DNA of 64,000 nucleotides, taken from contig NC_134470.1 of the NCBI RefSeq assembly GCF_964194025.1, forward strand, positions 65,286,001-65,350,000, in the 5' to 3' direction. Position 1 is the stretch's first letter, and the number at the start of each line of letters is the position of its first letter. Positions 19,621 to 46,144 of this stretch are shown here, in pieces. The position numbers and the translations under genes are program-made. Under the pieces are notes generated by a model. That model saw only the letters and a list, made by a program, of their open reading frames with translations. It made no database searches and was not told where the DNA came from. The DNA comes from Convolutriloba macropyga. Its lineage: Eukaryota.

Positions 19621-20079
19621 TAATTTTTATTTTTAATCTTCATGATGTACATACAAAAAATTGTGAGAAAATATTATGCTCGCATTTTAGGCCATTCTTT
19701 ACTAATGTAAGGTCAAAATTTTAGTTAAATAATTCAATGATTTAATAATTTTAACATAATGTTATATTCTTAACTTTACATCGCCTCTTTTACCATTTGC
19801 ATTTTATTCTTATGTGTATCAGAGCTTTTTTAACAATGGCGTCGTGCATTAGCTCTTTACGAGGTATTCTACATCTCACTGATATCGCTTTGCATCCAGC
19901 TGTTTTTAGATTTGATGCCTATAACTTAAACTATTTGGTGGCTATAGCAGGCTGTAAACTATTTGGTGGCCTGCATTCTCATCTGCATTAGATGATTTCC
20001 AAGTCCATACATTAATCAATGTCCGCTCCTTATTACATCGTAACCCCATATAAGAACCAACTATAACAAATTTTGGATT

Positions 20080-20279
20080 NNNNNNNNNNNNNNNNNNNNN
20101 NNNNNNNNNNNNNNNNNNNNNNNNNNNNNNNNNNNNNNNNNNNNNNNNNNNNNNNNNNNNNNNNNNNNNNNNNNNNNNNNNNNNNNNNNNNNNNNNNNNN
20201 NNNNNNNNNNNNNNNNNNNNNNNNNNNNNNNNNNNNNNNNNNNNNNNNNNNNNNNNNNNNNNNNNNNNNNNNNNNNNNN
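20080..20279. other. Assembly gap (200 N)
   Basis: Run of 200 n; contiguity across it is not guaranteed. Confidence 1.
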
Positions 20280-21732: not shown

Positions 21733-24602
21733 CACTGTTTTTCTGAAAGTATTGATGCAATAATATCATTATATCTATTTCAATGGAGCAAAAATTACTG
21801 AATAACATCTAATAAGATCATTCTGGGGTGTTTAGTGTGAGCCAAAATCAAATTCAATGAAGAGTTTAGTTAATCAAAGGTGGTAACTACTTAATGATGA
21901 ACTACTTAATGATCTGCCAGCTTAAGGAAATGATAAAATTGACTCACTGTTGTCCACTTAAGCGCCTTCTCCACGCTTACAGCATCTAATTTCTACAATC
22001 TGTCAATAAGATAGAAATTGAAGCCTAATAGATAATTATTTGCAAGAAAGGCTCTCGAACAACTAATTGCAAATTAGGAAGATATATAGGAACTTGCAAA
22101 CCTGTTAAGATTAAGAACCGCCCTTCACACCATGAAACTGTCACCCCCGAAAACAGTTTTAGTGAATCTCATTCTTAGAGACTTGTAAGTCGTAAGGCTC
22201 AAAGATAACTTGATGCCCTCCTGGCGTTACCTGTTTATACCGTTTCTGAGAACGAAAAGTCAAATGATCCAGACCAAAGATCCGGAAAAAGAAAAATTAC
22301 ATAAAAAGACCACAAGACTAATACACTTTCTAAAAACTTTGTTTGAGAGCAATTAAAAAAGCCAACCATTTATTTTGGGAAAGCCATGCAGACATTAGAA
22401 CAAATGAAAAAGAGGAGAATGAAATCGATTTTAAAAAGCAAAACAGAACAGACAAAATTTCAAACGCACCCAGCAGAGTGCTAGCAAATAGCTACAAAAT
22501 ACACTCCGAAGACCTGGATATAGAATCAAAAAGGAAATCGAGCATGTGGAAGTATTAACGATTTTTAAGACTGCTGTTATTCTACAACTTTAATTCACAA
22601 AGTCACCTTCGATTGCATTTTCGACCAAAAATTAGAAAGAACATAAACCGACAAACGTCGGAAAAATTACTCTCCCATGACAGACTGGGCGTAAATTTTT
22701 CTTTATGGGCGCAAGAACATCATAAAAAAGTAGGGTTCGAACCCCGACCTCCCGCGTCCGAACCCCGACTCGGCTATCAGGGACTTCTCATCGCTTCTCG
22801 AACAACCGGTTTTACTTGAACAATAACTTTATTTCAGAGTGAGAGGAATTGAAATCAATCAAAAATCAAGAAATGCGTGAAAAAGTCACTTGAAAAGTCA
22901 ACAAATATTCCAGAAGAAAAATGGAAAACGGTCACGCAAAAAATTTGCATTAAAAAAGACACGCGTTAACAATAACTGCATCTCATTCAAGAGCAACTAA
23001 TCAATTCTCTTGCGCGAGTCCATTCTCCAGGCTGTCTTCTGGTTTCTGATTTCCAAAAACAGATGGGAAATTTTGCTAATGGAGTGTGAGTGGCCGTGGA
23101 TAATAGCGTAACTGGAGGGCTCCAATAATTTAACTTAAAACAAGGAAGAAAAAATTTCTGCTCACTTTTCATTTCCTTTTAATAGTAAACTGGCAGCAAT
23201 GAAGTTCAGCACCAATAATGAACGAGAGCAATTTAATGTCAAGCAATAATGTTGCATAAAAAGACACACAAGCTCACAATAATTGCATCTCATTCAGGAG
23301 CAATTAAACAAGGTTAATCATGCATGATCAAAAGTGTTTTTTTGGCATCAACCTAAAAATATATATATAAACATAATTAAAAAAATAAATTACGAAATTT
23401 CATTTGCGAAGCTAATAACACTGACCAGCTGAATACATTTACAAATGCGAGATTCTACAGCGATATAAATTTTTGAAAAAAAGAAGCAAAAGAATACCTT
23501 GTAGAGTCTTCAATAACAACCGAAGATTTTCACTCAAAAATACACCAAAGGAGACCTTTCAATGAGAGCAAAATGACCAAAAATGTTTCCAAGGAAAAAC
23601 AAAAACAACCAAACATGAAATAAAAAACAAAAAAAGTAGCCAACATATTGCCCAGGAATCGGCGCAAAATTATATTTACTTGTTCTCGAAACAATTTTGT
23701 GCTGCTAAATTTATTAAACCACAGGCTAGTTTTCAAGAAGACTAACGGGTCCCAAAATGTTATAAACAAAAAATGCTAACAGCACACTTAGCACCTACAA
23801 AATTAAATCCAGCTGACGAATTCTAAGGTAACTGTTTGACGCACAACTTTACCTGACTATCCTATATCGAAAGCTCAAAATCATCGAAAAAAAGTTCACC
23901 AAGACGAAAGCCAAATCACTCAAGCAAGCGGAGGAACATTCAAGAACAATTAGACAAGCAAACAATTTGCATATATGCAGGGGGTAGGAAGGGGGTATCG
24001 ATGGGTACACAGGACACTGGAAAGAGATTAAAAAAATCAAATGACCAACATCTTGAATATAACCAGGTAATAGGTGGTACCTTTGCATCAGAAACAAACT
24101 TTACGTTCTCTTAGTGTTAATGCACAACATTTTAAGTCATTGATCGAAAATATACAGGTCAGAGTTCAGCTCATCAAAAAACATGCTCTCGAATGACAGG
24201 TGGCGCAACTTAATTCAGGGGCTCTATCATAGATAAATTTTTCTTCATAGGTCCAAAAAGATCAGCCAAAGATAGGATTCGAACTCCGACCTCCTACAGA
24301 TATCTCGAAACTGAAGAAGTCAGGGGCCAAAACCTTACTTGAAAATACTAAACTGGTCCGCAATATGCTTCGATAAAAAAGACACAAATTGTTGTAATAA
24401 TAGCTTCAATTTCTTTCGAGAAAAAATTAGTATTTTGATTGCTCAAAAAAAGACGCAAAGCAAAGGTCTGCACGATACCTATATTTCATCAAAAAGAGAT
24501 GGCCTTAAATGTGAAAACTCAATTTTTAATTCTGATCGTAAATTCCAAACAAACACAATTTGACAATTCAACGAGATATTACGCAAAAAGGTGGTAATTA
24601 TA

Positions 24603-25421: not shown

Positions 25422-25612
25422 CTAGAATAAAAAAAAACATGCTGATCAAGCATCAAGTACTGCCAAGTTGTAGCATTAAATTGTCGTTGTTGAATAACAT
25501 CTCTTATGGAGCTAAATAAGAGCATGGGAATAATCGGAAGCTGAGAACTGTCACAAAACAATCAAATTACACGAACTTCAATTTTCCTTGACAATAATGA
25601 GTAGCAGGACGT

Positions 25613-26784
25613 AGTAGTAAGGTGTCTTACTGGGCACGCAACGGGGGGGGACATTTGGGTGTTACTGTGTTCGCAACGGGGGGGGACACGAAAAATTTTT
25701 TCGAAAAGTTGATAGTTTTTGGCGTTTTGGCAAGAGCGGTGGAAAACGCCAAAAACTATCGCCTTTTCGAAAAATTTTTTCGTGTCCCCCCCCCCGTTGC
25801 GAACACAGTAACACCCAAATGTCCCCCCCCCCCCCGTTGCGTGCCCAGTAAGACACATTTTTGGCAAATTTCTGAATTTTTTGACGTTTTTTGGTAGGTT
25901 TGGTTTGTTTTATATGTTAGTCGGGAAAAAGCACTGCTGTTCCAGTGGTTGTCATTTTGTAATCAGCCCAGGTGAGCCTCATCAGTAAAAAAAACTTTTT
26001 GAAAAAAAATTGAAAAAAAAATGAAAAATTCAAAGTGTTAAAATTGCATGAATTGTATTTTGCCCTGGGTTTCAGGTCTCAAAGACGATTTTTTGTTGAC
26101 CTCATCTCAGCTGGTGGGCCTAATCATTGAAAAAAACTTTGAAAAATTTTGGGAAAATTCAAAAATTTTCAAGTATTAAAATTGTGTGAAACACAATTTG
26201 CGCTGGGTTGCAGGTGTTAATGTTAATTTTTTGTGGACATCATTTTACCTGGTACTAAGATTATATCAAATGTTTTATAACCAAAAACTGTCATCAATAG
26301 ATTGTTGACTGTTTGTAGTATTCTTTATGTCTGTTACTATCAGTCAGTACTCTCAAATACTCTTATAACCCTTTATTTGATGATGCATGAGAATAAAATA
26401 TAGTAATAGGCAAGGAGGTGAGTGGTTGTTGCTATGCATGTGTTGTTGTTAGAACTCTCTGTGTCATCAATCTATTTTTAGAATATAATGTATACTATGA
26501 CTAACTACTATAGTCACTGCCGAAGGTCATTATACACGAGTAGTTGTCGTATTCCATTGTGATTGGGAGACCGATCGACCGAGAGTGTCTATGATTTATT
26601 TTTGAATAAGTTTACATTTTTGAATAAGTTCAACTGTCTGCATTGGGTGGTTTTGTTATTACAGTTTAACACAGTACTTGTATAGCAATAGAGCAAACTT
26701 ATAAGAATTTGTTTGAGTTTCAGTTTGAGTTTGAGTTTGATTTGTAAACAAACTATGCCAGCGGTTGACGATTGTTCCTTCTTT
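25613..26784 (+). repeat. Left TIR of the Polinton
   Basis: Reverse complement of 37068-38229 with a few SNPs and small indels; includes the terminal hairpin 25622-25856 and two ~140-bp direct repeats (25971-26250). Confidence 0.95.
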
Positions 26785-26862
26785 TTTATTTTTTCTCATG
26801 ACAGTAGCGGTACAGAAAGACGTTTTGTAGCTGTCAGTGTAAACACTTGTTTTTATACTTAA
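26755..26862 (+). pseudogene. Truncated, decayed copy of the PC4-like gene start in the left TIR
   Basis: MPAVDDCSFFFIFSHDSSGTERRFVAVSVNTCFYT* versus right-arm MPAVDDCSFFDFSHDITCTEKRYVVACVKTY. Confidence 0.8.
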
Positions 26863-27196
26863 AAAAATAGACATTAAAGAAGTAAATAATCTGCTTATGT
26901 CTTGCGCTTGAACTAACAGATTTAAATTTAATTGGATAAAAACTTCCGGGAAAACATATTGTACTAGCAAACTTCCAAGAGTCCTGCCATGAAAACATAT
27001 TGAATTTGTCATTATGAAAGTGTTTTTTTTTCAGAACATACTTTTAGCCATCAAATGAGAGAACACTAGAGACGAACAAACAATTAAAACATCAACAAAA
27101 CAACGAACAATGTTTTATTGTATTGTTAGTAGTTTATCAAGGTTGAGCAAATGCAATTCAAAAGATTATAACTGTTTGAGGTTTTAGGAGACTAGT

Positions 27197-27760
27197 TTAG
27201 AGTTTACGTTTTTTTGGAGCAAGACAAGAACTGACAGGCGGCGTTTCAAGACTGTTGGTTGCAACGAGCCTACTACATTCGGGTGTTTTGATTAAACTTG
27301 TTGAAATTGTTGTAGATGTTATCGAGTTTTCTAAGTTCTTGGTTGTTGAATCTGGAGTTTCAGTAATAGCTGGAATTTTCCAAAAGTTTTCAATGAGCTC
27401 CAAATCCTGCCAATATTCTTCCTGATTTTCGTAGATAGGTACTTCTTGAACATCGTAATCATAGAGAATTCTTCTAATATCATCTCCCAGAACGTTTGAC
27501 TCAAATATAAACTCACGAGTACAGCCCGCAACGAATTCCAGAGTATATTGAGCTCCCTTAAATGACGCTTTTTCACATCTAAAAGACTGAATGAAATCGA
27601 AAGTAACAACAGGTAATGCCATGTGTTTCACAGTTTTCCAGTCTTTGCCTTGATACTCTTGCTGAACAATAACAATATTTTCTTTTTTTAAAGTCTCGTA
27701 TGCAATTGTTCGACTGCTGGAAGAATATTTTTCTTTTAGTATAATTGCAATGGGAAACAT
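27197..27760 (-). CDS. Polinton hypothetical nuclear protein (187 aa; possible PC4-like N-terminal domain, C-terminal NLS)
   Basis: Intact ATG ORF ending PKKRKL; AATAAA on the minus strand at 27114-27119. Confidence 0.7.
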   Translation of the reverse strand: MFPIAIILKEKYSSSSRTIAYETLKKENIVIVQQEYQGKDWKTVKHMALPVVTFDFIQSFRCEKASFKGAQYTLEFVAGCTREFIFESNVLGDDIRRILYDYDVQEVPIYENQEEYWQDLELIENFWKIPAITETPDSTTKNLENSITSTTISTSLIKTPECSRLVATNSLETPPVSSCLAPKKRKL

Positions 27761-28579
27761 TTTAAGATTTCAGTGATATCTTCGTCTGTTTACAATCGTA
27801 TAAGTGGCCTTGAATAAATTGATGAAGACTGTAAAATATACCAAAAAAAAGACTGTTAGAAAAATCTAAGAAGAATATGGTAAATATAATGAGTTAATTA
27901 CTGTTGAAGTAATCTGATTAGTTGTTATCAACAAGAATTATCAAAGCTTAAACCTATATCAATACAATTTCCAACGATTGAGACAGAATATAAATATTTT
28001 ACTTATAAAGTATTGAATCTAAAGAATCTTGTTTAAGCGAAGAACTGAAAACTCATTTTGTGGGTGGTCTGCTACCGTAAATAGAAGTGTTTGTGTTCTA
28101 CAAACATTTAATTATATGGACGAGAAGATATTTTCTTTAGTGTCTGCTGTTTTTATGCTACATGTACTCAGCTTATCTAAAATAAAGACAGATTAGAAAG
28201 TATCCGTGTAATCCCAGCCAGTTCTTATCTTTCCGGAAAGCTATTTTAAGAATCAATATAGAACATTTTAAGTGGGTTGTTATTTTATTTACAATACCTT
28301 ATGTTCAAACTGGTGCTATAAAACAGAAATAATAGACAAATTCTTTTTTGTTGTGTTTGACTTTCTAATGAAAGAGAGTTTGTATAAAAATGTCACTGTT
28401 TTACGAATGAACGAGGACAAACATGAAAAATGTTTTAATTACTTTTAACGCTTTCAACTGCAGCAGACAATTAGTTTTGTAATCTGTTCCTCTATGAATT
28501 AGATTGATTTAATTTTTTCATAGAGAAAATCAAAAGTGTCTATTTTTTTCAGATTCAGTCGACTTCAATCTAACTCGGA

Positions 28580-29011
28580 ATGCGTCTTGATAAACCAATA
28601 GTTTGTAGATATTGTTTGAAAAACATTCATGAGAAGTATTTGTTATTAGCCACAACATACCCAAACAATTCAGTAAGACTGAACTATTTCTTAGCAGCAA
28701 GTGAATACTTTAGTCAAAAGGAAAACTTTGATTATGATAATGCTTTGAAACTTCGACCTTACGGAGGACTTATTGGAATAGATAACTCTTCTTTAGATTC
28801 ATACCTAAACAACTCCAAAATTCTACGATTACACGCAATTTTGCATGACGCTGGTGGTTTCATCCAGGAGCTCTACACTGAAGGACCCGGCTACTCGTAC
28901 ATGCTTCCCTGGAAGCTTAATAGTTGTTTCACTGGACATCTGACAGGAATTCTTTTTTGTTTGTATATTAAAGTTTTCCACTCAAAAATTTATCACTTGT
29001 TGGAATGTTAA
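28580..29011 (+). CDS. Putative phospholipase A2-like protein (143 aa)
   Basis: YGGLIG loop followed by LRLHAILHDA (His-Asp dyad), reminiscent of parvoviral/adintoviral PLA2; first ORF of the + strand block after acceptor tttttttcag. Confidence 0.5.
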   Translation: MRLDKPIVCRYCLKNIHEKYLLLATTYPNNSVRLNYFLAASEYFSQKENFDYDNALKLRPYGGLIGIDNSSLDSYLNNSKILRLHAILHDAGGFIQELYTEGPGYSYMLPWKLNSCFTGHLTGILFCLYIKVFHSKIYHLLEC

Positions 29012-29637
29012 GCAGTAAAACAGTTGTGTGAGACCTTGAAGGTTTCCGTCACAGGAAAGAAAAATTTATTGTTAAAGAGTTTGGTATATGTACTGAAGAT
29101 TACAACGATTGTGTTTTGTTTTCACCAACATCAAAATTTTCCGATTTGACAAATCCGCAGAAAACTACAATCAGTTGGTTATCTAAAAACTTACATGGCT
29201 TAGATTGGAACTCTGAAAACTATCCCTACATTTATCTAACACAAATTGTCCAAAGCGTTCGCTTAAGAAACCCAAGAGCGGTTTACTACGCTAAAGGTTT
29301 TGAAAAGTCTCAACTTTTATCGGAGTTGCTCGATTGTCCAGTAATCGATTTAAATACTCTGAAGTGTCCTAAAATATCTTACAGTTTTTTTACAGTTAAC
29401 TGTGGGAATCATAGCTCAACACAACGTGGTATCTTCAACAATCATTGTGCACGGGAAAAAGCTTGTTTCTATTTTGACTGGTTGACAAATGAGAGAGGAA
29501 TTGACGAAAGTGGAAGCACCCTTGTCAGCGAATTCGACTATTTGCGCCTTGATCACGAAGGAGGGGACACTGAACCTTTCAATTTGCAAAGGAGAAGCGA
29601 TAAAAAGTGGTACTCAAATTCGTCAGAAAAAAGTTAG
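29005..29637 (+). pseudogene. DEDD-family 3'-5' exonuclease-like protein with a premature stop at codon 9
   Basis: ATG at 29005 gives MLSSKTVV*DLEGFRHRKEKFIVKEFG, in frame with ORF 29116-29637 (WL...HGLDW, KGFEK, DL...CP, HCA); TGA at 29029-29031. Confidence 0.7.
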
Positions 29638-29785
29638 GGTGTTATTGACAGAGGAAATTCGTTCGATTACACACTTGGTTTTTTACATCGAGCCTTTCAT
29701 TCAGTGGAGAAAACAAAATGTCAGATTCTCAACGCAAAGTCTCGCCTCCGAAACTTCTATTGATATCGAAACATCCAACTGGTAA
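29489..29785 (+). CDS. Polinton hypothetical protein (98 aa; possible PC4-like fold)
   Basis: ATG ORF overlapping both neighbours within the packed + strand block. Confidence 0.55.
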   Translation: MREELTKVEAPLSANSTICALITKEGTLNLSICKGEAIKSGTQIRQKKVRVLLTEEIRSITHLVFYIEPFIQWRKQNVRFSTQSLASETSIDIETSNW

Positions 29786-29966
29786 AGAAGTAGATCAAAA
29801 TGACAAAATGCTGCCTGAAGAAATTCAGGAACTCGTGAACACGGACAAAGTCAAAAAAATTGTGTACTATGAAAAAACTACAAGATTACCCGCATGTTTC
29901 ATGGTGCACATGAATGAATTTTTGAGTGATTATAGTTGTTATGAACTGTTCTATGTAAAACATTAA
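29718..29966 (+). CDS. Polinton hypothetical protein (82 aa)
   Basis: ATG ORF followed directly by AATAAA at 29974-29979. Confidence 0.55.
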   Translation: MSDSQRKVSPPKLLLISKHPTGKEVDQNDKMLPEEIQELVNTDKVKKIVYYEKTTRLPACFMVHMNEFLSDYSCYELFYVKH

Positions 29967-30008
29967 AAAGTACAATAAATTTTCATTTTATACACATTTT
30001 CTTTTGTG

Positions 30009-30275
30009 ATGGAACAAGTAACAGTTGATCAAGTTGTGCAAGAAACTCTTTTCGAAAAGCAAAGTAGTGGAAAATCTACTTGGAAATTTTGTAACCAGAT
30101 AACATTACCAAGGTCGGAAGTTGTGTTTTTTGTTCAAATGTTTGTAATTTTGATGCTAATAGTTCTTTGCATTGTGAAATTGACTTTGCTTAAACCAACT
30201 TGTGAGGAAACATCAGTTTGGATTTCGATTTTGTCAAGTTTAGTTGGATATATCTTACCAAATCCTCGATTATGA
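30009..30275 (+). CDS. Small two-transmembrane protein (88 aa)
   Basis: Two hydrophobic segments ending WISILSSLVGYILPNP; its stop overlaps the ATPase start (ATGA). Confidence 0.75.
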   Translation: MEQVTVDQVVQETLFEKQSSGKSTWKFCNQITLPRSEVVFFVQMFVILMLIVLCIVKLTLLKPTCEETSVWISILSSLVGYILPNPRL

Positions 30276-30964
30276 ACAAAATTATCCCTACCAGTGACAG
30301 AATCTTTATGGCCGTGGTAGGTCCGTCGAGTTGTGGTAAAACGAATTTAATTTTCAGAATATTAACAGGAAACACCTTTTATCCAAAGTTTAAAAATGTT
30401 ATTTTTCTTTACCACGAAATGCAACCAATATACTCACAAGTTGACCAGCATTCAAACATTGTTTTCAAAAAATTCACAAACTTGGAGTTTTTGCAAAATA
30501 CTGAAAATTGTTTGCTTATATTTGATGATTCTTGTGAGGAAATTTTTAATGACAAAGAGTTTGTCAAGCTGGCTACCGCAGGTCGACACAAGAACATTAA
30601 TGTCATTTATGTGAAACACAATCTTTACCAGCAAAGTAAATGGTCACGAACAATAGATTTGAATACAACTCATATCATTTTGTTCAAATCACCACGTGAC
30701 GTTCAGCAAGTCGAGTTTCTCGGTAAGCAACTGAATCTTACTCATTTTTTAAAAAATTGTTATGAAATAGCAACAAGAGAAACATTTGGACACTTATTGC
30801 TTGACCTGGATCCAAAAACTTCGGACTGTCTACGATTTTGTTCAAACATTACAGAGCCTGGACCGTCGGTCTTCTACATACCTTCAGACAAAGCCGATAT
30901 TACTCACATATCAAATGAACGAGAAAAAATTCTTTATACTGAAGCGAATGGTACTTTTATCTGA
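30272..30964 (+). CDS. A32/FtsK-like genome-packaging ATPase
   Basis: Walker A GPSSCGKT, Walker B LLIFDD, A32-type motif TAGRHKNI; ATG at 30272. Confidence 0.93.
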   Translation: MNKIIPTSDRIFMAVVGPSSCGKTNLIFRILTGNTFYPKFKNVIFLYHEMQPIYSQVDQHSNIVFKKFTNLEFLQNTENCLLIFDDSCEEIFNDKEFVKLATAGRHKNINVIYVKHNLYQQSKWSRTIDLNTTHIILFKSPRDVQQVEFLGKQLNLTHFLKNCYEIATRETFGHLLLDLDPKTSDCLRFCSNITEPGPSVFYIPSDKADITHISNEREKILYTEANGTFI

Positions 30965-31220
30965 TTCTGAGTTGAGGAAATTTCTCCGCACTTACGACGA
31001 CAATATTGTATTGGTACTGTGTGAATGTTTTTACAACGTAATCAGAGGACATGTAAAAGTTCAGATTAACGATTTGGAGCAATATGAAAACGTGATCAAG
31101 ACTATTCTTCGTAAAAACGTTTCAGTTGAAAAGAAAAGAGCCATACTACTCACAAAAACAGGTTTTGATTTAGTTCGGCTCATTATTCATTTTTGCTACC
31201 AGTATTTGAGTCAATCATAA
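30948..31220 (+). CDS. Small helical Polinton/adintovirus protein (90 aa)
   Basis: LCECFYNVIRGHV...KKRAILLTKTGF pattern resembling a small ORF found next to the ATPase in animal Polintons (recalled, not searched); ATG at 30948. Confidence 0.65.
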   Translation: MVLLSDSELRKFLRTYDDNIVLVLCECFYNVIRGHVKVQINDLEQYENVIKTILRKNVSVEKKRAILLTKTGFDLVRLIIHFCYQYLSQS

Positions 31221-31231
31221 AAGAGAAGAAA

Positions 31232-31987
31232 ATGACAACTGCTGAGGAATTTATTTTAATTCCCAAAAAAGTTTATATGAAAACTCAACCATACCAAACC
31301 CGGGTCTTAGAGAATCCTGACGTTAAACACAAATCAGCACAGCTCTCTATTATAAATAGAATGCGACCAAAGGAACACATTGAAGCACAGTTCAATGACA
31401 AACTGTCGGAACAAGACTCTGGTGTTGATGATGATGAAAATCGGCTCAAACATTCAAATAGACGGGCAGATCAGGTCCTAAAAACATTGTCATCTCTCTT
31501 GCCTCATTCAAAATACCTAAAGTGTAATTATATTGTAGATCTAATTAAAAAGTCTAATCGTGTGCTCATTGGTGAAGACGAGAAGTTACTCATTGACAAC
31601 AGTCCAACTGACATAAACGCATTCACTTTCTTGTACAATTTACAGCAACCAACAAAGAAAATTGACAGTCCTGATTATTTTGAATTATTAAAAGTGTTAC
31701 AAATAAAGGAAGAACAAGTAATTAACAGCAATGCTAAAACTTCGATCAGGAAAAGTTCTCCAGAAACCGCAACAAAAAGAAAAAAAATCGTCAATAAATC
31801 ACAGAAACAAAAACGTTCAAGGTTTCAAAAGCCCCCAAAACAAGACAACCAGAAGCAGCAACAGACCAGCAGAGCACTAATCACCGAAGACGAAAGCAGT
31901 AGTGACGAAAAAGAAGAGGAAGGTTTCGAAACTCCGTACGAACCAAGTGCACAGAAGGAAAAACAATGGGAATCTTACGACGAGTGA
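31232..31987 (+). CDS. Polinton hypothetical protein (251 aa; basic and acidic low-complexity tail)
   Basis: Long intact ORF in the core block; NLS-like KRKK. Confidence 0.8.
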   Translation: MTTAEEFILIPKKVYMKTQPYQTRVLENPDVKHKSAQLSIINRMRPKEHIEAQFNDKLSEQDSGVDDDENRLKHSNRRADQVLKTLSSLLPHSKYLKCNYIVDLIKKSNRVLIGEDEKLLIDNSPTDINAFTFLYNLQQPTKKIDSPDYFELLKVLQIKEEQVINSNAKTSIRKSSPETATKRKKIVNKSQKQKRSRFQKPPKQDNQKQQQTSRALITEDESSSDEKEEEGFETPYEPSAQKEKQWESYDE

Positions 31988-32918
31988 AGAAAAATTGCTG
32001 CAGTCAATGTACACAAAAGGGCCAGCTGCGTTTGGAAGCGTTGAAAATTTACAAAAAAACACAAAATTACAACCTCGCAAAGTGAAACAGTTTCTAGAGA
32101 CCAAGAATGCTCACACAAAATATAAGGGCTTTCGAAAAAGTTTTGCACGTTTGAAAGTTATTGCATATGACCTTGATGAAATTTGGTCTCTTGACTTGGC
32201 ACACGTGGACAAACTGTCAAAACAAAACGCAGGTATTAGGTACTTATTGATTGCTGTTGACTGTCTTTCACGCTATCTACGTGTCGAACCACTCAAATCA
32301 AAATATGCAACAACAACAGCTGAAGCCTTCAAACGTATGATTAAGCATAAACAGCCGAAAAAAGTTTGGGTGGATGCTGGAACAGAGTTTAAGGGAAACT
32401 TCAAAACACTTTGCCAGAGGAGAAACATTACAATTTATCAAACTTTCAGCGAAAAGAAGTCTGCGTTTGCAGAAAGGAACATCCGCTCTTTAAAGAATAA
32501 TATTTACAAGTATCTGGAAGAAAAATGGACATATTCATACATCTCTCAGTTGAAAAATTTTGTGCAAACAATAAACTCACGCATCAACCGTGTAACAAAA
32601 ATAGCTCCGAACAAAGTAACCAAAAAAGACGTTCCTTATCTGTTATCATTAAATGCAAGTGCATCCGAGAAATTAGTTAGTCGACCCAAATTTCGAATTG
32701 GTGATTTTGTTAGAATATCAAAAATTGATTTACCCTTCCGAAAAGGTTACAAACAAACATTTACCGACGAAGTGTTTGAAGTTTACGATATTCCAACGAT
32801 AAACCCTCCAACATACAGCCTAATTGATTCGAATCAGAATCCAATCAGTGGTAAGTTCTATCAATTGGAACTAGTGAAAGTTGCTGACAACAGCGAAGCG
32901 TTCACAAAGCATGCATGA
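31977..32918 (+). CDS. Retroviral-like (rve) DDE integrase
   Basis: WSLDL (D), WVDAGTEF (D), AERNIRSLK (E); C-terminal FRKGYKQTFTDEVF and GKFYQLEL motifs; start uncertain (ACG at 31977 or ATG at 32007). Confidence 0.95.
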   Translation, partial: TTSEEKLLQSMYTKGPAAFGSVENLQKNTKLQPRKVKQFLETKNAHTKYKGFRKSFARLKVIAYDLDEIWSLDLAHVDKLSKQNAGIRYLLIAVDCLSRYLRVEPLKSKYATTTAEAFKRMIKHKQPKKVWVDAGTEFKGNFKTLCQRRNITIYQTFSEKKSAFAERNIRSLKNNIYKYLEEKWTYSYISQLKNFVQTINSRINRVTKIAPNKVTKKDVPYLLSLNASASEKLVSRPKFRIGDFVRISKIDLPFRKGYKQTFTDEVFEVYDIPTINPPTYSLIDSNQNPISGKFYQLELVKVADNSEAFTKHA

Positions 32919-33774
32919 GTTTACCATACATTTAGTTTCATCAGCTTCCATGGACATTTTTCCAGAAAACACTTTGGCTAACTTCAAAAACTTTTTCAAT
33001 GAAGAAATCAGTCTGCAAGGTGATTGGAGAGTAGCTTTGAGTGAAATTATCTTCCCATCCAGAATCAACCAGGTTAATAACACTCGAATCATAAAGTATT
33101 CCTCTGAAGGTAACAAAAACCATCAGAGAAGTATTCCATCTGGTGCTGTTTCAAAACCATACAAAGGGGAGACAGTCTTGATCAATACTGGAAGCTATGA
33201 GAACTTGGAACACCTGATAAAAGCCATCAAGACAGCTACTGGTCTAACTAAATTCAGTCATCAGTACAATAAAATCACAGGCGTTTTGGTTTTGTTTTTT
33301 GGTAAAAATGAAGGAATTACATTTCCTGACGAAGAAATACCAAGCATTCTGGGCTTTGAAGGAATCAAAGATGGGTCAGGTACTCATATTGGTTATAAAA
33401 TGATAGATTCCTTTGACAATTTGGCACTGGGTGACGGAGAAGCAAAAGCTTTTGTTGCTGATTACCCTTTTGATCTGCTTGCAGGAAAACAATTGATATT
33501 TGTATACAGCAACATAATTGAGTATCAACACATTGGAGACACAAAAGCTCCGCTGATTCGTATCATTGATTCAAAACAACGCCTGAAAAACGGTAGCCTT
33601 TGTGAAATTGAACCTACGCATAGAATAGTTTTTAGCAATTTGGAATATAAGAAATTGTTGTCAAACAATTTTCAGTGTATTGAAGTTCAGTTGAGAACCG
33701 AAACTGGCAAATTTGTTCCATTTACGGGAACAGGAAAAGTTATTCTTACTTTAAACTTTAAAAAATTTAATTAA
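32911..33774 (+). CDS. Minor capsid protein (penton, single jelly-roll)
   Basis: N-terminal FTIHLVSSASMDIFPENTLANF...LQGDWRVALSEI and C-terminal FVYSNII..Q..GD...PL.R...LTLNF, typical of Polinton pentons. Confidence 0.88.
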   Translation: MHEFTIHLVSSASMDIFPENTLANFKNFFNEEISLQGDWRVALSEIIFPSRINQVNNTRIIKYSSEGNKNHQRSIPSGAVSKPYKGETVLINTGSYENLEHLIKAIKTATGLTKFSHQYNKITGVLVLFFGKNEGITFPDEEIPSILGFEGIKDGSGTHIGYKMIDSFDNLALGDGEAKAFVADYPFDLLAGKQLIFVYSNIIEYQHIGDTKAPLIRIIDSKQRLKNGSLCEIEPTHRIVFSNLEYKKLLSNNFQCIEVQLRTETGKFVPFTGTGKVILTLNFKKFN

Positions 33775-34200
33775 ATGGAAGCTTATTATCAACAACAATC
33801 AGTTTCACCATACTTTGCAGGACACTATCGTCAACGAGGCAGTGGGTTCGGGGCTTTAGCGGCTGGAATTGGTAGGGCGGCCATACCGATAGCTAAAAAG
33901 TTTTTGTGGCCTGTTGCTAAAAAGATTGGAAGAGAACTGTTTGTACAGGCGGCACCAGAGATTGTTGACGTTGTAGCCAAAAAGAAGAGTCCTAAAGAAG
34001 CACTCAAGTCAACTGTTCAGAAAACGGTAAAGAAACAAGTCGGTGGCTCAAGAGCCCGAATTGGAGGTGTTCGTGGTGGAAATGTTTATAAAAAACAGAA
34101 ACAGAGCGGTCCTGTCAAATCCCGAAAAATCATTCAGAGAAAACAACCGTTACTGAGAAGTCGGTCAGATTTCTTTTCCAAAGTGAAAAATGAATACTAA
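33775..34200 (+). CDS. Basic amphipathic virion protein (core or membrane-lytic precursor)
   Basis: YY..Q...RQRGSGFG followed by an amphipathic Lys-rich helix; protease-site-like QVGG, RIGG and VRGG; Arg/Lys-rich tail. Confidence 0.75.
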   Translation: MEAYYQQQSVSPYFAGHYRQRGSGFGALAAGIGRAAIPIAKKFLWPVAKKIGRELFVQAAPEIVDVVAKKKSPKEALKSTVQKTVKKQVGGSRARIGGVRGGNVYKKQKQSGPVKSRKIIQRKQPLLRSRSDFFSKVKNEY

Positions 34201-35511
34201 TTTATTGCCAGCAGAGGCAACACACACAACTCTAGACTTGTTTGAAAAGCAGCCTCTCCTGATCACCTTTGACAATGCTTTTACCCAAAAGGTTGGTCCA
34301 TCATACTCACCGGATGGTCCAATGCTGGAATTCGAAGTTGTTGGCGACAGGAACAACTTTATTGATTTGCAAAAGTTTCTACTTGAAATAAAATGCAAAA
34401 TCACGAGAACCAATGACGCCGATTTGAGAACTGGTACTGATGCCACAAACACAGATTCGCCGTATTTTAGCAATAACGCATTACACTCTCTGTTTTCAGA
34501 GTGTACAGTTTCGGCAAATGGCGTTAAATTGTCAAATACAAACGGCAACTACGCACACAAGGCTTTCATAGAAACAGAATTCTCATCCGGAAGAACAGCA
34601 AAGAGCACATGGTTAGTTTGTCAAGGCTATTATTATGAAGACGAACCGGCTAAAATTGATGGAGCTGACAACAGAGCTACTGATGTTGCTGCGCGAAAAG
34701 CTTTAGTTGCTGACTCTCTGGAATGTTCTCTACTTGGAAAACCGGCCAGTGATATATTGACCTGTGACAAACATCTTCTCAGTGGTGTTACACTACGCAT
34801 CTCCTTCAGAAGGTCTCCAAACGATTTTACCGTCATATCCGAATCTAATAAACATTACAGAGTAAAAATTGTTGAAGCAAATCTGTACGTGCGCAAAATG
34901 ACCGTGGCTGATCATGTGTTGTCTGCGATAGAAAAAACTTTGCTAAAAACACCAGCTGTCTATCGGTACACGGAGGTGTTGCCCAGAACTTTTCTTGCCA
35001 CTGCTGGCATCCGCAGTTGGAGTCAAGAAGACATCTTCTCCAAAGAGTTCGAAGAATGATTATAGCAATGTCAACCAATCAATCATATTTAGGAACTAAC
35101 AGAACGAATCCTTTCCATTACCAGAAATTCAATTTGAATGAAATAGTAATTTATCGAAATGGACTACCGGTTGTTGGAACACCAATTTCAACAACCTCAG
35201 ATCAACGAGTCTACTTCAACACGCTTGAAGCTTTAGATTTTCTTGATAAAGGTGGTCATGGCATTCCCCTAGCTGATTATCCAAATCACTTTATTTTGGC
35301 CTTTGACCTTACTTCAACACAGGAGGCTTCACACGATTTTATTCATCCTGAATTAACAAATTGTTCAATTTCAGTGGAGCTCACTTTTGGAACACCTTTG
35401 GGTGACAACGTTGAAATTTTATTCCTAGGCGAACGAAGTTCAACTTTTTACGTCAACTCTGAACGAAAAGTAACCAAAAACTCGGTTATTACATATCCTG
35501 TTGATGGATAA
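34190..35511 (+). pseudogene. Major capsid protein (double jelly-roll, hexon-like), split by a frameshift near 35046
   Basis: ORF 34190-35059 (NNALHSLFS, ANLYVRK) continues in another frame as VRRMIIAMSTNQSYLGTNRTNPFHYQKF...AFDLT; ~440 aa when joined. Confidence 0.88.
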
Positions 35512-35935
35512 TTTTGAGATAACTTATCTAGTAAATAAATGTTTTCATCTGAAGCACAAGTTCTGTGGAGTTTTTGCAGCTGACAATTTTCCAAGACTGC
35601 CAGAAAATTGCTTTGCTGTGGTCAATGCCTCAATATCAACATCATCGGGTAGTCATTGGCTACCGATTTGTAATTATAAAAAAACAATGTACTTTGCTGA
35701 TCCACTTGGGCAAGCACTGGATTGCTACCATTTTGTATACACTCGACTGCTGCAGTTCTACTTCGAAGAAGAAGTCGTTCAGTGTCTCAGATTGCAGCCA
35801 ATTCAGAGCCCAAACTCCAAACTGTGTGGACTCTTTTGTATTTATATTGCTCATATTATTTTCACATATAGCTATCCGTTTGTACACTACATGAATGATG
35901 ATGATTTACTACGATTTGCTAAGCATATGATGTAG
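35504..35935 (+). CDS. Adenain-like cysteine protease (capsid maturation)
   Basis: Catalytic H (GSHW), D (FADPLG), Q and C (IQSPNSKLCGLFC). Confidence 0.92.
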   Translation: MDNFEITYLVNKCFHLKHKFCGVFAADNFPRLPENCFAVVNASISTSSGSHWLPICNYKKTMYFADPLGQALDCYHFVYTRLLQFYFEEEVVQCLRLQPIQSPNSKLCGLFCIYIAHIIFTYSYPFVHYMNDDDLLRFAKHMM

Positions 35936-36039
35936 GACAAATCAATCAATTTAAATTTTTTAGCATCAACTGTTTTCATAAATTCGTAACTTTTTCCCCT
36001 TGATGCTAGATCACTCATTTTTTAATAAAACAAGTAGGA

Positions 36040-36648
36040 TTAATTTTTTAATTCAAATCGAAAGTTACATTTTACATTCTCTTTATCAACATTCAGGGAG
36101 CCATATCCACTAATAATAATATCAATAATTTTTGAAAATTCTGCATAAGAACTGTTCTGATAAATACTTAAAAATCGGTTAAAAGTACAAGTTGGTAAGA
36201 AATCAGTTTGAACTTGAACATTCTCTTTGACAGTCTCCAGTTCAAAGATATTTGGAAGCTTTCTTTTGGAGCAATATAAATCTAGCTGATGTTGGTGATT
36301 GTAAATGACTGCTTGCTGCAACTTCTCAAAAATTTCACCGTGAAAAGTGATGTTGACAGATTGTGTTTTGTGGAGTAGAAGTCTGAAACATGTGTATAGG
36401 CAAGGTATAGAATAGGGTTTTGAAGAATTTTTTTTGAAAGCCTCTGTTACTTGATCCAAAGCTGCAATAACATGATAGTGTTGTTCTTTTATTCTACAAA
36501 AGCTGTTATTCTCATGCAAACTGTAAGCAAAACTGTTGTTGATTTCTTTAGTATCAAATATTGGCTCACTTCTGCAGATAAAATAGTGAAATTTTTTTCG
36601 AAACTGTCGAAAGAATTCAGGTGTTCGTTCAAACATTGCCTCAACCAT
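36040..36648 (-). CDS. Putative HUH-superfamily (Rep_2-like) endonuclease-fold protein (202 aa)
   Basis: FHYFICRSE / FAYSLHENN / KEQHYHVIA / CLYTCFRLLLHK are collinear with Rep_2 motifs; HYH at 36472-36480; the canonical catalytic Tyr position appears to be Leu. Confidence 0.5.
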   Translation of the reverse strand: MVEAMFERTPEFFRQFRKKFHYFICRSEPIFDTKEINNSFAYSLHENNSFCRIKEQHYHVIAALDQVTEAFKKNSSKPYSIPCLYTCFRLLLHKTQSVNITFHGEIFEKLQQAVIYNHQHQLDLYCSKRKLPNIFELETVKENVQVQTDFLPTCTFNRFLSIYQNSSYAEFSKIIDIIISGYGSLNVDKENVKCNFRFELKN

Positions 36649-36650
36649 TT

Positions 36651-37097
36651 TCAATACTGTGTGTCGCTCTCAGAACTTTTCTTCGCTTTCTTCTTTGATC
36701 GACCAGCAACCTGAGTTGAATTAAAGCTATTCGTCTCCGGTGAGAACGCAAACTGATAACGTCGTTTCCTTCCCGTTATCTTATTGTGTTCTTTTTTGAT
36801 AGGTTGTTCTGATTGTCCGGTCCTTAGTTTTTCACAGAGTGAATTGTAGCTTTGAGATAATTGTTCAAACTCGGCTAAAGATAGTGTTATTCTCTGGTTG
36901 AACTTGAAACCATCACTGTTACAATTGTTTCTGTTGTCTTGGGTTTGATCACGGAAGTTATCTTTTTTTAAAAGTTTTACCGTTATATATGTTCCAGTAG
37001 AGTCATAAGTTTTCACACAAGCAACTACATAACGTTTTTCTGTACATGTAATATCGTGAGAAAAGTCAAAGAAGGAACAATCGTCAACCGCTGGCAT
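36651..37097 (-). CDS. PC4-like ssDNA-binding protein (148 aa)
   Basis: KRYVVACVKTY...TYITVKLLKK...FNQRITLSLAEFEQL follows the PC4 strand-strand-strand-helix pattern; basic tail; ATG lies inside the right TIR. Confidence 0.6.
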   Translation of the reverse strand: MPAVDDCSFFDFSHDITCTEKRYVVACVKTYDSTGTYITVKLLKKDNFRDQTQDNRNNCNSDGFKFNQRITLSLAEFEQLSQSYNSLCEKLRTGQSEQPIKKEHNKITGRKRRYQFAFSPETNSFNSTQVAGRSKKKAKKSSESDTQY

Positions 37098-38229
37098 AGT
37101 TTGTTTACAAATCAAACTCAAACTGAAACTCAAACAAATTCTTTTAATTTTGCTCTATTGCTATACAAGTACTGTGTTAAACTGTAATAACAAACCACCC
37201 AATGCAGACAGTTGAACATGTAAACTTATTCAAAAATAAATCATAGACACTCTCGGTCGATCGGTCTCCCAATCACAATGGAATACGACAACTACTCGTG
37301 TATAATGACCTTCGGCAGTGACTATAGTAGTTAGTCATAGTATACATTATATTCTAAAAATAGATTGATGACACAGAGAGTTCTAACAACAACACATGCA
37401 TAGCAACAACCACTCACCTCCTTGCCTATTACTATATTTTATTCTCATGCATCATCAAATAAAGGGTTATAAGAGTATTTGAGAGTACTGACTGATAGTA
37501 ACAGACATAAAGAATACTACAAACAGTCAACAACCTATTGATGACAGTTTTTGGTTATAAAACATTTGATATAATCTTAGTACCAGGTAAAATGATGTCC
37601 ACAAAAAATTAACATTAACACCTGCAACCCAGCGCAAATTGTGTTTCACACAATTTTAATACTTGAAAATTTTTGAATTTTCCCAAAATTTTTCAAAGTT
37701 TTTTTCAATGATTAGGCCCACCAGCTGAGATGAGGTCAACAAAAAATCGTCTTTGAGACCTGAAACCCAGCGCAAAATACAATTCATGCAATTTTAACAC
37801 TTTGAATTTTTCATTTTTTTTTTCAATTTTTTTTCAAAAAATTTTTTTTACTGATGAGGCTCACCTGGGCTGATTACAAAATGACAACCACTGGAACAGC
37901 AGTGCTTTTTCCCGACTAACATATAAAACAAACCAAACCTACCAAAAAACGTCAAAAAATTCAGAAATTTGCCAAAAATGTGTCTTACTGGGCACGCAAC
38001 GGGGGGGGGGGACATTTGGGTGTTACTGTGTTCGCAACGGGGGGGGGGGACACAAAAAAATTTTTCGAAAAGGCGATAGTTTTTGGCGTTTTCCACCGCT
38101 CTTGCCAAAACGCCAAAAACTATCAACTTTTCGAAAAATTTTTTCGTGTCCCCCCCCCCCCCCCGTTGCGAACACAGTAACACCCAAATGTCTCCCCCCG
38201 TTGCGTGCCCAGTAAGACACCTTACTACT
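37068..38229 (-). repeat. Right TIR of the Polinton
   Basis: Reverse complement of 25613-26784; terminal hairpin at 37980-38220. Confidence 0.95.
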
Positions 38230-38574
38230 GGACGTGCCAATTCTAGTTCCCCGTTCACGTATTTTTCACTTACTTAGTTGATTAAGTTTTACATGGATTG
38301 GAAGAAGACTTTGGATGGCTATAATTTGAGGGTGTCAGAACGCTGAAAATTAACGTAGTGGATTGCTTTGCTGCGCAACTGCTGTCTAAAAGCACTTTGA
38401 GCAGAATGAGCAAATTTTATACCATATCTTCATTTCTGCACTAAAAAGCTTGCCTTCTCAAAACAATTGCGGAGAATTAATAGCTTTCATCCACATAAAA
38501 GTATTATCTTGGCATATAGGATCCAAAGCCTTGAAATTTGGAAAATCAAACCTGGTTTTTTAAAATCGGCTTAC

Positions 38575-39135: not shown

Positions 39136-41934
39136 TGTTCCGACCCTGCTCATCTTCATTTTTGACTTAATTATCCACCAAATGTAGATTAGAGAATATA
39201 CACAGATAGATGTTTGAGTTTAAAAAATTTGTTACAAAACCAAAACATTAAATGAGTTGAATAATGTCATGCCGCATTAGAGAACTTTTGATGCCTGCCA
39301 TTAAAAAGACTACGAGACCATTCAAACAACAAAACACACAAAAGCAACAAAATATATTTTTTTGGCAGAAACAATATCTAAATTGTATCAAAGCCAAAAT
39401 ATCATCAAATAAAACCTAAAATACACACATTCACTTTTACTTAACTACAAAGCAGACGCTACCTGTCCATAATGAGACTAGATAAACAGTCGACAAAAAG
39501 AAAAAAAGATTAGGATAAAAAAATTTTTTCAACCAAATGATCTCAAAAACAGTAGCCTTCAAGCAAAAAAAAAATGATATTAATTTACTTATAAGTCATC
39601 AGAAAACCAATGTGCACGGTCTCTGGTGAGACTATGCCATCGAAAGGCTGCAAAATATACAGATAGATAAAAACAAGAATTTACAAAAAATAAACGAAAA
39701 CATTCTAGCCAATGAAATCATCAGTCATTATCCGAATAATATATACTATTTCAATCACTACTTTTAATTTTTAGTTAATATACAAAAAGACTGTGTATTT
39801 GTTTAATAGGGTTTCATTTGAAAATCAATAGGACAAACGCATGGTGTCCAAGATATAAAATATTTGTATAGAAAAAATCAATAGAGCGGTTAAACTTTAA
39901 ACCACAAGAAAAAGGATAGGACATTTCATTGCCGAGATTAAGTTTCAAGTAGACAAAAAGAAGAACAACAGAGGAAAAGCTCAAAAATCTAAAAATTTGA
40001 AAGCAAATAAAATCAAAATAATCAAAACCAAAATCTATCAACTGCAAGCATCAACTAAGTTCTGAATTTCTGGGGACTACAGAAAAAAATTACAGGCATA
40101 AACCAGAAATTTGAGCAAAATGCGGCAACAATGTTACAGTTAAAAAATTAATCAATGAAAAATTCTGAATACGTTAAAATGATTTCTTTTTGAAACCAAT
40201 TTTCTTTTCTCAGTACTGCAATAGTGTGGTTCAAAAAAATAAAAACTAACTAACAAACAAAAACCACAAAATTCTAATGACAACACATAGTGTCAGAGCA
40301 ATTAAAACCCATAACATAAAACTGAACTCATTAAGTACGTTAACTCCTACGTCAAGTGGACGCCAATGAGATCATCCATTAATCAGAAAAAGTGGGATTA
40401 CAAAAAGGACAAAAAGCGGCAAAAACAGAGAACAATAGAAAAGTGCAAATGGAAACTGTCGAAGCCAATGAAATCATGAGCTATTCGCTGATAAATTTCT
40501 AAATGTTCACCTATGACTCTTCAACGCAAATGGGCACTTTCAACATTCTGAACAAAAATGCCAATTTTTTTAAAAATTGCATCAGAACTCGAAATCAAAA
40601 TATTAGACAGAACATTACCGACTACCGTCGGGCAAGTTGCTCTCAAACAACCGGCGAGCGGTTGCCTTCGTCAGTCGCTAGTCACTGTTTAGTGAGGCTA
40701 GCTTTAGCTTAATTGAAAGGGTGTGAGGTCAGCGCAGCGGGTGGTTCACCGGAGAGGCTGATGGGTGTGGGGTAATAATGGAGGTGGGGGGAGGAGGGGG
40801 CAACGGTGGGAGGATGGTTTTTAGCTACATGAAGCCCTTGAGACCCGAAAGGTGTGCATAGGTGGTGATTGGGTAAGAAGTGAGAGGGGGCTGATGTGGG
40901 CGGGGGGTGGGGGTGGCGTGTCAACCTCCAAGAACCACCCTCCACACCATAAGAATATGTCTCCAAAACAGTTTCTGTGAATCGCATACTTAGAGGCTAG
41001 TGAGCTGAAACGCTCTAAGAGCACTTAATGCCCGCTGGATGCAACCTGTTTATCCCGTTTTTGAGTTCAAGAATTCAAATGGGTCAGACGAAAAATCGGT
41101 CAAGCGATAAATCGCATAAAAACAGACCGACAAGACTATTATAATTACAACTAACTTCATTTGAGAGCATTTAAAAAACCACAAACCAGAATACTTTGTG
41201 ATTCACTATAAAGTATTTGGCAACTGTCGTTAGGGGGCATTAGTGAGGCCGAATTTCACAGAAAAGTGTTTCAAAAGCGGGTCAAATTCAATTTTTTTGA
41301 AAAAAACTTAAGTATTAACAGCCGTTGAGTGAGCATTCATAGCATTAGATATATTCACTTAACACTCTTTAAGAAGCCAATTGGCCAATTTTCAATTAAC
41401 CAGATTAATCCATAAAACTACAAAATTGCAACAAAAGCAGGCAAAACAACAATTCCCTAAAAAATTTGAAAACACACGTGTCAAAGTCATATAAAACACA
41501 AGCGAAGATTCGCTGAAAACAAAATATAAGTTCATTGGGTCTAATTTGATCGTAAATGAAAAGTGACTTGTCTCTGAATATGAAAAATATTGTGAAAAGG
41601 ATAAAAACAGCTCTCCAATAGAATTCGAATTCTTTAGATTGTAAAATTCCTGATGCGACCAAAACCAGTCTTTTTTGCTGCTCGTCTTGTGAAAGCATAT
41701 AAAATGGCCCATAAAAGACGCTAACGGTGAGCAAAATTACTCCCAAAGTGTTCACAAAAACTTTAAACTTCGATAGTTCCTTTAAACTCTATTCAATTTT
41801 AAATTCTACGCTTGGAGAGCTTTTTAATGATACCACTCACAATTCTCGACGATGAATATATCAATAGGCCAAAATTAATTACAAGAAATTATTTGAGTAT
41901 ATAGTTAGCCCCTCAACTAAGTGGGGTCGGAACA
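39136..41934 (-). mobile_element. Non-autonomous element, family B, inverted copy containing a nested family A element
   Basis: tgttccgaccctgctca at 39136 and actaagtggggtcggaaca ending at 41934. Confidence 0.55.
40611..41177 (-). mobile_element. HINE-like family A copy
   Basis: ccgactaccgtcgg hairpin and ttgctctcaaac at the left, ttcatttgagagcattt at the right; internal block shared with 17570-17776. Confidence 0.65.
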
Positions 41935-45781: not shown

Positions 45782-46144
45782 CTGTAACAATCTTCCGGTC
45801 TCATAAGTTTCACAGACATATAAAAAGATGAAAAGACCAGGCAAAATAGGAAAAGTGTCAGAAAGACAACTCCAGAAGGAACTCAAAGCATAGTCGAGAC
45901 GGGACAAGACGCCCGTCCATATAAATATAAATCCCAAGGTAATAGTCGTAAAAACTATTGGGCGGGAACAATAATCAAAAGCCCAAATTCTTAAAACAGC
46001 AAAAAGCATCATACAGAAGCAACTATCAGGCACTGGGAGCTCCGAAAAATCTCACCGATGCAGTAACTAAGATGCTTTAGCAACCAACTCCAATGAAAAA
46101 TGCCAGTAAAGCCATAAAACAAGCAATTCCGTAATGGAATATGA

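Follow-up and report, generated by a model that had tools for sequence, protein, structure and literature searches.

The 64-kb stretch of DNA from the acoel worm Convolutriloba macropyga analysed here, which we call the window, carries at positions 25613-38229 a sharply bounded insertion of 12.6 kb. By its sequence, this element belongs to a sub-lineage that lacks the polymerase within an otherwise conventional Polinton/Maverick family of C. macropyga. On balance, we lean towards the view that it represents a long-lived Polinton lineage lacking a polymerase, which integrates and probably packages itself and would be replicated in trans by co-resident full-length relatives. A preliminary description of the window had offered a helper-dependent satellite as one option, and this is now the best-supported reading, as the full-length relative L007 has ends that match those of the window element and does encode the polymerase.

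Polinton ends without a Polinton polymerase

The element is flanked by a 6-bp target-site duplication (TSD), GGACGT, with the left copy at 25607-25612 and the matching right copy at 38230-38235. It starts with AGTAGTAAGG at 25613 and finishes with CCTTACTACT at 38229, i.e., with AG...CT termini, which are the outer edges of a left terminal inverted repeat (TIR) of 1,172 bp (25613-26784) and a right TIR (37068-38229). The TIR blocks are 97-99% complementary, their mismatches lying mostly in the length of G/C runs, and the outermost ~245 nt of each form a nested palindrome (25619-25859 on the left, with G/C runs, and 37977-38223 on the right). A 6-bp TSD together with AG...CT-ended TIRs is a hallmark of Polintons/Mavericks, and relatives of the element show the same arrangement with other TSDs. 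The ends were thus described correctly from the outset.

What defines Polintons is self-synthesis, for which they encode a protein-primed family B DNA polymerase (pPolB) alongside an integrase. The window element lacks this polymerase hallmark: none of its open reading frames (ORFs) matched DNA_pol_B_2 or any other polymerase or helicase family in Pfam, and a tblastn search of the entire window with the 1,217-aa pPolB of a relative found nothing at E <= 1e-3. The only P-loop protein is the packaging ATPase. The absence of pPolB claimed in the preliminary description is confirmed, and that of a helicase motif agrees with the Pfam result.

Short and long forms of one family

The closest relatives were found in ENA assembly ERZ25071359, the source of L001, L015, L007 and L004; L004 is one and the same locus as L003, on C. 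macropyga chromosome OZ077305.1. The genome of C. macropyga has been described (PMC13650328). The family has two forms, a short one of 12.6-14.6 kb without pPolB (the window element, L001, L002, L009 and L015) and a long one of 17-19 kb with a pPolB of ~1,200 aa (L003/L004, L005, L006, L007, L008 and L010).

Identities of the putative major capsid protein (MCP) are given here relative to the N-terminal MCP piece of the window copy. Among the short forms, L001 (MCP 99%) is 99% identical to the window element at the nucleotide level and has another right flank, its contig beginning at the element end with the left flank missing; L015 (872-14296, TSD AACATC, 98.6% nucleotide identity) also belongs to the window lineage, being a member of its MCP cluster at >= 90% identity. 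This cluster has 60 distinct members, many of them truncated; one is a RefSeq protein of C. macropyga. The two other short forms are L002 (716-14823, TSD GTTATG, MCP 90%), with 2-kb TIRs, and L009 (956-15528, TSD TACATA, MCP 74%), which has 2.8-kb TIRs and is degraded. Among the long forms, L007 is complete (1014-20051; 19,038 bp, TSD TCCGTC) and shares the L004/L007 type of MCP (76%) with L004/L003, which is 98.5% identical to it at the nucleotide level and has its right end at the locus edge. Further long forms are L005 (MCP 69%), whose right end is cut by the locus, L006 (4042-20937, TSD CTTCTA, MCP 62%), the degraded L008 (5677-19924, TSD AGCCCT, MCP 84%) and L010 (MCP 81%), a partial contig from Tara Oceans marine metagenomes.

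The pPolB gene lies at 3597-7250 (minus strand) of L007 and at 15214-18867 of L004, where it was called as three pieces that together align over the full length of the 1,217-aa L007 protein at 98%. The pPolB of L006 matches DNA_pol_B_2 (E 5.3e-12), and those of L004 and L005 are 53% and 48% identical to it. The N-terminus of the family pPolB is a C2H2 zinc-finger region (Pfam zf-C2H2, E ~5e-5 for the L004 piece), which could serve as a reader of end sequences.

Relative to the long forms, the short forms are without pPolB, p281 and p182. Every short-form gene of at least 80 aa has a long-form homologue and none is specific to the short form, so no replacement replicase has been gained. The architecture also differs: the p187 homologue of the long forms lies on the plus strand directly after p148, whereas in the window element, L001, L015 and L002 p187 lies at the opposite end on the minus strand, and in L009 it is found in both TIRs; the TIRs measure 1.2-2.8 kb in the short forms versus 0.12-0.23 kb in the long forms. 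The long form, with pPolB, p281 and p182, is ancestral: the short form has lost all three genes, carries p187 at its opposite end and has acquired longer TIRs. A possible path starts with the shedding of the polymerase block; the shortened end may then have been copied onto the opposite end, giving a longer TIR, and one copy of p187 may have been lost afterwards.

The long-form relative with the 81% identical MCP was also seen in several marine metagenome samples, where exactly the same 439-aa capsid protein is encoded on 20 contigs (L010-L014); judging from these contigs, either its host or the element itself is widespread in ocean plankton. The Tara Oceans contigs of this relative stop short of the termini. 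Two of them from different Tara samples, L012 and L013, start at the same exact base, ~277 nt upstream of p143; the shared start probably reflects a break in the assembly where a repeat has its inner edge, rather than the end of a genome.

Age and selection

The polymerase-less gene order is found in five insertions, with four distinct TSDs (GGACGT in the window, AACATC in L015, GTTATG in L002 and TACATA in L009) and the different flank of L001; the preliminary description had named several independent insertions of this kind as support for a mobile family. In a neighbour-joining tree of the MCP with 200 bootstraps, the short forms group together at 68% and each of their two inner pairs at 100%; only these three clade values were used, as the deep-node values are unreliable owing to a rooting mismatch. 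The short forms also have the rearranged p187 in common.

Between L001 and L002, synonymous sites are saturated, with a proportion of synonymous differences (pS) of 0.57-0.86, while the nonsynonymous divergence (dN) ranges from 0.08 to 0.57. The MCP has the lowest value of all genes (0.08), the ATPase, integrase, penton and p143 genes follow at ~0.15, and p208, p148, p187 and p251 reach 0.34-0.57. The short lineage has therefore survived and branched over time, with purifying selection acting on its virion module and integrase. A deletion derivative in decay would hardly show such a pattern.

Shared ends and proposed replication in trans

The first ~75 nt of the window termini are identical to those of L004 and of both L007 ends, save for the lengths of the G runs. 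The ~250-nt palindrome is wholly common to the window element and L004/L007, where it is near-identical, and the similarity extends over ~480 nt, while the coding interiors of the two lineages are just ~68-70% identical. Between the window element and L004, the integrase is 68% identical and p208, an HUH-Rep-like protein considered below, only ~35%, so that a common p208 does not explain the matching ends. They seem better explained by a shared polymerase than by the specificity of p208, and shared ends are what would be expected if the replication proteins of the long form must recognise the short form. The window lineage therefore has what defines a satellite partner, the lack of a replicase combined with ends common to a replicase-bearing element in the same genome.

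Apart from the three lost genes, the short form retains all genes of the family, among them those for the integrase, packaging ATPase and protease and the two putative capsid genes. The mechanism that we propose is as follows. The short form would integrate by its own integrase, with which the 6-bp TSDs are consistent, and would package itself with its own capsid module, provided that the capsid assignment holds. Its DNA would be copied by the pPolB of co-resident long forms, plus whatever primes that polymerase; replication by the long-form pPolB would be the reason why the window lineage has nearly the same terminal ~250 nt as L004/L007. The window lineage would thus behave as a long-standing satellite, or non-autonomous partner, of full-length Polintons.

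Several points weigh against this proposal. Replication in trans is something that we infer from sequence comparison, and support for a single short-form clade is moderate. L002 and L009 have a common terminal sequence that is unlike that of the window element, and termini of this type are absent from the few long forms sampled (five lineages, four of them with readable ends). The ends may have been exchanged between the window lineage and L007 in either direction. The long forms L006 and L008 have no palindrome comparable to those of the short forms, and the palindromes and longer TIRs of all short lineages could be an adaptation to life without pPolB. Finally, the HUH-like nuclease domain of the family could in principle start DNA synthesis by host polymerases.

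Terminal palindromes and a possible hairpin mode of replication

The last of these points leads to an alternative in which the short form is a self-sufficient hairpin replicon. Here p208 would nick the terminal palindromes and the fold-back ends would prime host polymerases, as in the rolling-hairpin replication of parvoviruses; we regard this as unlikely, and think equally little of the further step in which the product is integrated by the integrase of the element or packaged. The chance that the clade is not a satellite at all, and that a capsid-encoding Polinton switched to host polymerases with an HUH-like nuclease acting at self-priming palindromes, appears similarly small to us. The age of the polymerase-less clade and the purifying selection on it would suit such a replicon, as would the lack of a sampled long-form partner for the L002/L009 termini.

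The palindromes themselves speak for it. Each of the three short lineages has them, built on one plan (AGTAGTA, arm, G run, C run, arm) but with differing sequences. Folded as single-stranded DNA, the ~245-nt palindrome of the window element reaches -130.6 kcal/mol compared with -38.8 +/- 4.0 for shuffles (z = -23). For the terminal 300 nt, values of -96 to -143 kcal/mol were obtained in the window lineage and at the L007 end away from pPolB (shuffled ~-30 to -35), -86 kcal/mol at the L007 pPolB end, in which the palindrome centre is deleted (shuffled ~-30), -49 to -61 kcal/mol in the short forms L002 and L009, with hairpins of ~60 nt (shuffled -17 to -32), and -26 to -49 kcal/mol in the long forms L006 and L008 (shuffled -23 to -34).

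Rolling-hairpin replication with hairpin transfer predicts that the ends occur in both flip and flop orientations. The asymmetric centre of the palindrome has the same orientation relative to the tip in all eight informative termini, of which six belong to short forms inserted independently at three sites; the L002 ends, compared by eye, are alike too. A single orientation counts against the self-priming model, though not decisively, since some parvoviruses have ends of one orientation. Of the features of a parvovirus-like rolling hairpin, the family therefore has termini capable of forming hairpins, whereas Pfam detected no helicase domain and the eight termini show no flip and flop.

The other component of such a system would be p208 (36040-36654, minus strand; 204 aa), which the preliminary description had called an HUH-like protein standing, with hairpin ends and PC4-like proteins, in place of the polymerase. 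Its profile matched 302 cluster representatives, all of ~200 aa. An AlphaFold model built with 48 diverse relatives is confident, with a predicted local distance difference test score (pLDDT) of 88 and a predicted template modelling score (pTM) of 0.65; a model built with 14 close relatives (pLDDT 38) was not used. Every Foldseek match of the model is weak (E 0.009-1, template modelling score (TM) <= 0.39), but the named ones are almost only HUH Rep nucleases of at least six families: pMV158 RepB, adeno-associated virus 2 (AAV2) Rep, geminivirus and nanovirus Rep, SIRV1 ORF119, microvirus initiators and parvovirus NS1. The last is the best match (probability 0.96, query-normalised TM (TMq) 0.39, root-mean-square deviation 4.4 A over 161 columns). 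The HUH motif is conserved among the 48 relatives, with H59 in 47, an aromatic residue at position 60 in 46, H61 in 46, V/I/L at 62 in 45 and L/I/M/V at 63 in 47; in the model, residues 60-65 lie on a strand. H47, at the position of an additional metal ligand, is kept in 46, so both the motif and the extra ligand of an HUH nuclease are present. The candidate catalytic residue, Tyr118 on helix 107-121 of the model, is less constant, being Tyr in only 36 of the 48 relatives and Phe in seven. Pfam and PDB profile searches with p208 gave nothing significant, and one of the 48 members matched Rep_OBD at E 0.079. A YxxK-type motif seen by eye in the window copy was dropped, as it is not conserved even in the closest copies. 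Taken together, the modelled fold and the motif make an HUH-type nuclease domain a reasonably probable, though by no means certain, assignment.

That p208 took over from the polymerase is not upheld. It occurs alongside pPolB in the long forms, as do p148 and p187 (all three in L004-L008 and L010), so it is a trait of the family and not a stand-in for the polymerase. The large palindrome too is present in the pPolB-bearing L004/L007; neither was acquired as a substitute when the polymerase was lost, and the proposal of a distinct replicon class, in which hairpins, an HUH-like protein and PC4-like proteins replace the polymerase, is not supported. The hairpin replicon is further weakened by the match between the window ends and those of a long form with such a divergent p208. 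For p148 and p187, the PC4-like label found no backing in Pfam (no match at E <= 0.1-1) or in the PDB.

Gene content and condition of the window copy

As the preliminary description had it, ORFs tile the interior of the element, which is borne out by the ORF listing. Starting from the left, p187 (27197-27760, minus strand) has a basic C-terminus resembling a nuclear localization signal. A series of plus-strand genes then comprises the conserved family genes p143 (28580-29011; 53-75% identity in L002-L006) and p210 (29005-29637), and the small conserved ORFs p82 (29718-29966) and p88 (30006-30275), the latter with a hydrophobic stretch. The A32/FtsK-type packaging ATPase (30218-30964) matches Pfam Pox_A32 at E 5.6e-5 (23.2 bits against a cut-off of 22.8) and has P-loop matches. 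It is followed by the small conserved ORF p90 (30948-31220), by the fast-evolving p251 (31232-31987), which has a basic low-complexity C-terminus, and by the rve-family (DDE) integrase (31902-32918). In the window copy, the integrase matches Pfam rve at E 2.2e-6, with a score of 28.3 bits that is below the cut-off of 32.6, and phmmer found no match for it in the PDB; its orthologues in relatives, 64-78% identical, have rve recorded at E <= 1e-5. The claimed ATPase and integrase genes thus stand.

For the capsid genes, the assignment is putative. The putative minor capsid (penton) protein of 287 aa (32911-33774) is assigned by position; the basic protein p141 (33775-34200) lies between it and the putative MCP (34190-35511; 441 aa when intact), which is followed by the adenovirus-type cysteine protease (35501-35935; Peptidase_C5 E 3.4e-8, 33.8 bits against a cut-off of 21.3). 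The two putative capsid proteins, of ~290 and ~440 aa, adjoin the protease, and the N-terminal piece of the MCP matched 652 relatives, typically of ~436-441 aa, a few of them named 'uncharacterized protein F54H12.2-like [Convolutriloba macropyga]'; no literature on the name 'F54H12.2' was found. Synteny, adjacency to the protease, length, conservation and this large ~440-aa family make the MCP a putative assignment, while searches of Pfam, PHROGs and the PDB with the MCP, the penton protein, p187, p143, p210, p251, p141 and p148 returned nothing significant. A scan of IMG/VR with the MCP alignment revealed no relative, and a scan of JGI metagenomes with the MCP only three contigs, all <2 kb. 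On the minus strand, p208 is followed by p148 (36651-37133), the 5' end of which lies inside the right TIR.

The preliminary description had called the element complete. Its ends bear this out, but the genes are not all intact: compared with the 99%-identical L001, in which all ORFs are open, the MCP of the window copy carries a single frameshift, p210 a single premature stop codon, and p208 is cut short by a few residues. The remaining genes of the window copy are open.

Damage of this sort bears on a second alternative, a transposon-only life in which the short forms would have ceased to replicate extrachromosomally, being excised and reinserted by their integrase and gaining copies when the host replicates or repairs its DNA, with the capsid genes on course to be lost. 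We consider this slightly less probable still than the hairpin replicon. The intact TSDs and the element's own integrase would allow it, broken genes are seen in many copies (the window, L008, L009 and the truncated members of the MCP cluster), and a published survey describes a continuum of viral and transposon states in Polintons (PMC4028283). However, the MCP is the most constrained gene at saturated synonymous divergence, the ATPase, penton and protease genes are constrained as well, and L001 has every ORF open, none of which is expected of a dispensable morphogenesis module.

The explanations that the element arose by a single deletion from a full-length copy, or that it is an error of assembly, are refuted for practical purposes: L007 does have pPolB between ends that match those of the window element, as the first of these would have it, but the same gene order recurs in at least five insertions with four TSDs and in three lineages ~28% apart at the DNA level, the interior is just ~70% identical to that of the long form with the same ends, and the architecture is rearranged, not merely deleted. 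The preliminary description had named two findings that would together overturn its reading, copies with the same TIRs that carry pPolB and a deletion breakpoint unique to this copy; the first is seen in L007, but the short form does not stem from a single deletion event.

Surroundings of the element

Several repeats lie in the window outside the element. A ~995-bp unit stands three times in tandem at 4552-6637 (99-100% identical), and a tandem array with a ~613-bp period and several copies 69-97% alike occupies 46064-50528, with a second block ~3 kb further. A dispersed repeat of ~70-175 nt (17613-17787, 22194-22368, 41009-41183 and 47988-48055; 66-85% alike) probably represents a host short interspersed element. 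Apart from the element's own genes, the longest ORF of the window (7530-9551, minus strand, 673 aa) matched nothing in Pfam at E <= 0.01. An exon-like ORF at 45418-45819 (minus strand) has a Pfam match (E 3.3e-14) to the C-terminal part of aldose 1-epimerase and marks a host gene ~7 kb away from the transposon. At 20080-20279, well outside the element, 200 consecutive N stand for an assembly gap or masked sequence. The short-form copy L002 sits in repeat-rich surroundings, with Copia-type reverse-transcriptase (RVT_2) fragments ~3 kb away (L002:17441-18598, minus strand).

Relation to known systems and significance

With the Polintons/Mavericks (Polintoviricetes; Kapitonov & Jurka 2006; Pritham et al. 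2007; Krupovic et al. 2014, PMC4028283), the element shares the 6-bp TSD, the AG...CT termini, the TIRs, the rve integrase, the A32/FtsK-type ATPase, the adenovirus-type protease and a candidate pair of capsid genes beside it, and its closest relatives have pPolB. It differs from them in that the window lineage is without pPolB, its family's polymerase-less members have TIRs of 1.2-2.8 kb, the termini are palindromes with G/C runs and an HUH-like gene is conserved. Like the non-autonomous members of transposon pairs, satellite viruses and helper-dependent virophages, it lacks a replicase, has ends in common with a replicase-bearing element of the same genome and is present in multiple copies; unlike them, it has its own integrase and a complete morphogenesis module under selection, and it is an old diversified lineage and not a set of recent internal deletions. 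We know of no HUH-like gene among the listed Polinton core genes.

In Polinton-like viruses and virophages, replicase turnover is common, Rep-like nickases are among the replicases (Gulliviroviridae), and the rve integrase is linked to pPolB (bioRxiv 10.64898/2026.10.13.758929). The short form resembles those of them with other replicases in having a double-jelly-roll-type module, here putative, plus something besides pPolB. It is unlike them in that it has gained no replacement replicase, that its HUH-like gene was there before the loss and sits alongside pPolB in relatives, and that it has an rve integrase. The hairpin-capable palindromic ends recall Parvoviridae and Bidnaviridae, which have hairpin or TIR ends and an NS1 protein with an HUH nuclease domain, and searches with the p208 model recover the nuclease domains of parvovirus NS1 and AAV Rep, if with weak matches; unlike these viruses, the element has no superfamily 3 helicase, is integrated double-stranded DNA of 12.6 kb with TSDs, has another capsid type and shows no flip and flop at eight termini.

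Gene loss has been reported in Polintons as the loss of the capsid module, i.e., capsid, ATPase and protease, towards a transposon state (PMC4028283). The short lineage is the reverse of this, as the polymerase was dropped while the integrase and a constrained virion module were kept over the long term beside relatives with pPolB. To our knowledge, nobody knows how integrated Polintons are copied from the chromosome, and with chromosomal copy-out unexplained, a protein with an HUH-like nuclease domain combined with terminal palindromes flanked by G/C runs is noteworthy. If the short form does replicate through hairpins, a Polinton morphogenesis module would be joined to parvovirus-like replication in an animal genome, and the family, with its HUH-like gene, hairpin ends and pPolB, would resemble the intermediate proposed for the origin of bidnaviruses. 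If, as we favour, it is copied by the polymerase of full-length relatives, this would be a satellite-like relationship between Polintons inside an animal genome, and would offer a natural system in which to ask what a Polinton polymerase recognises in the sequence of the ends.

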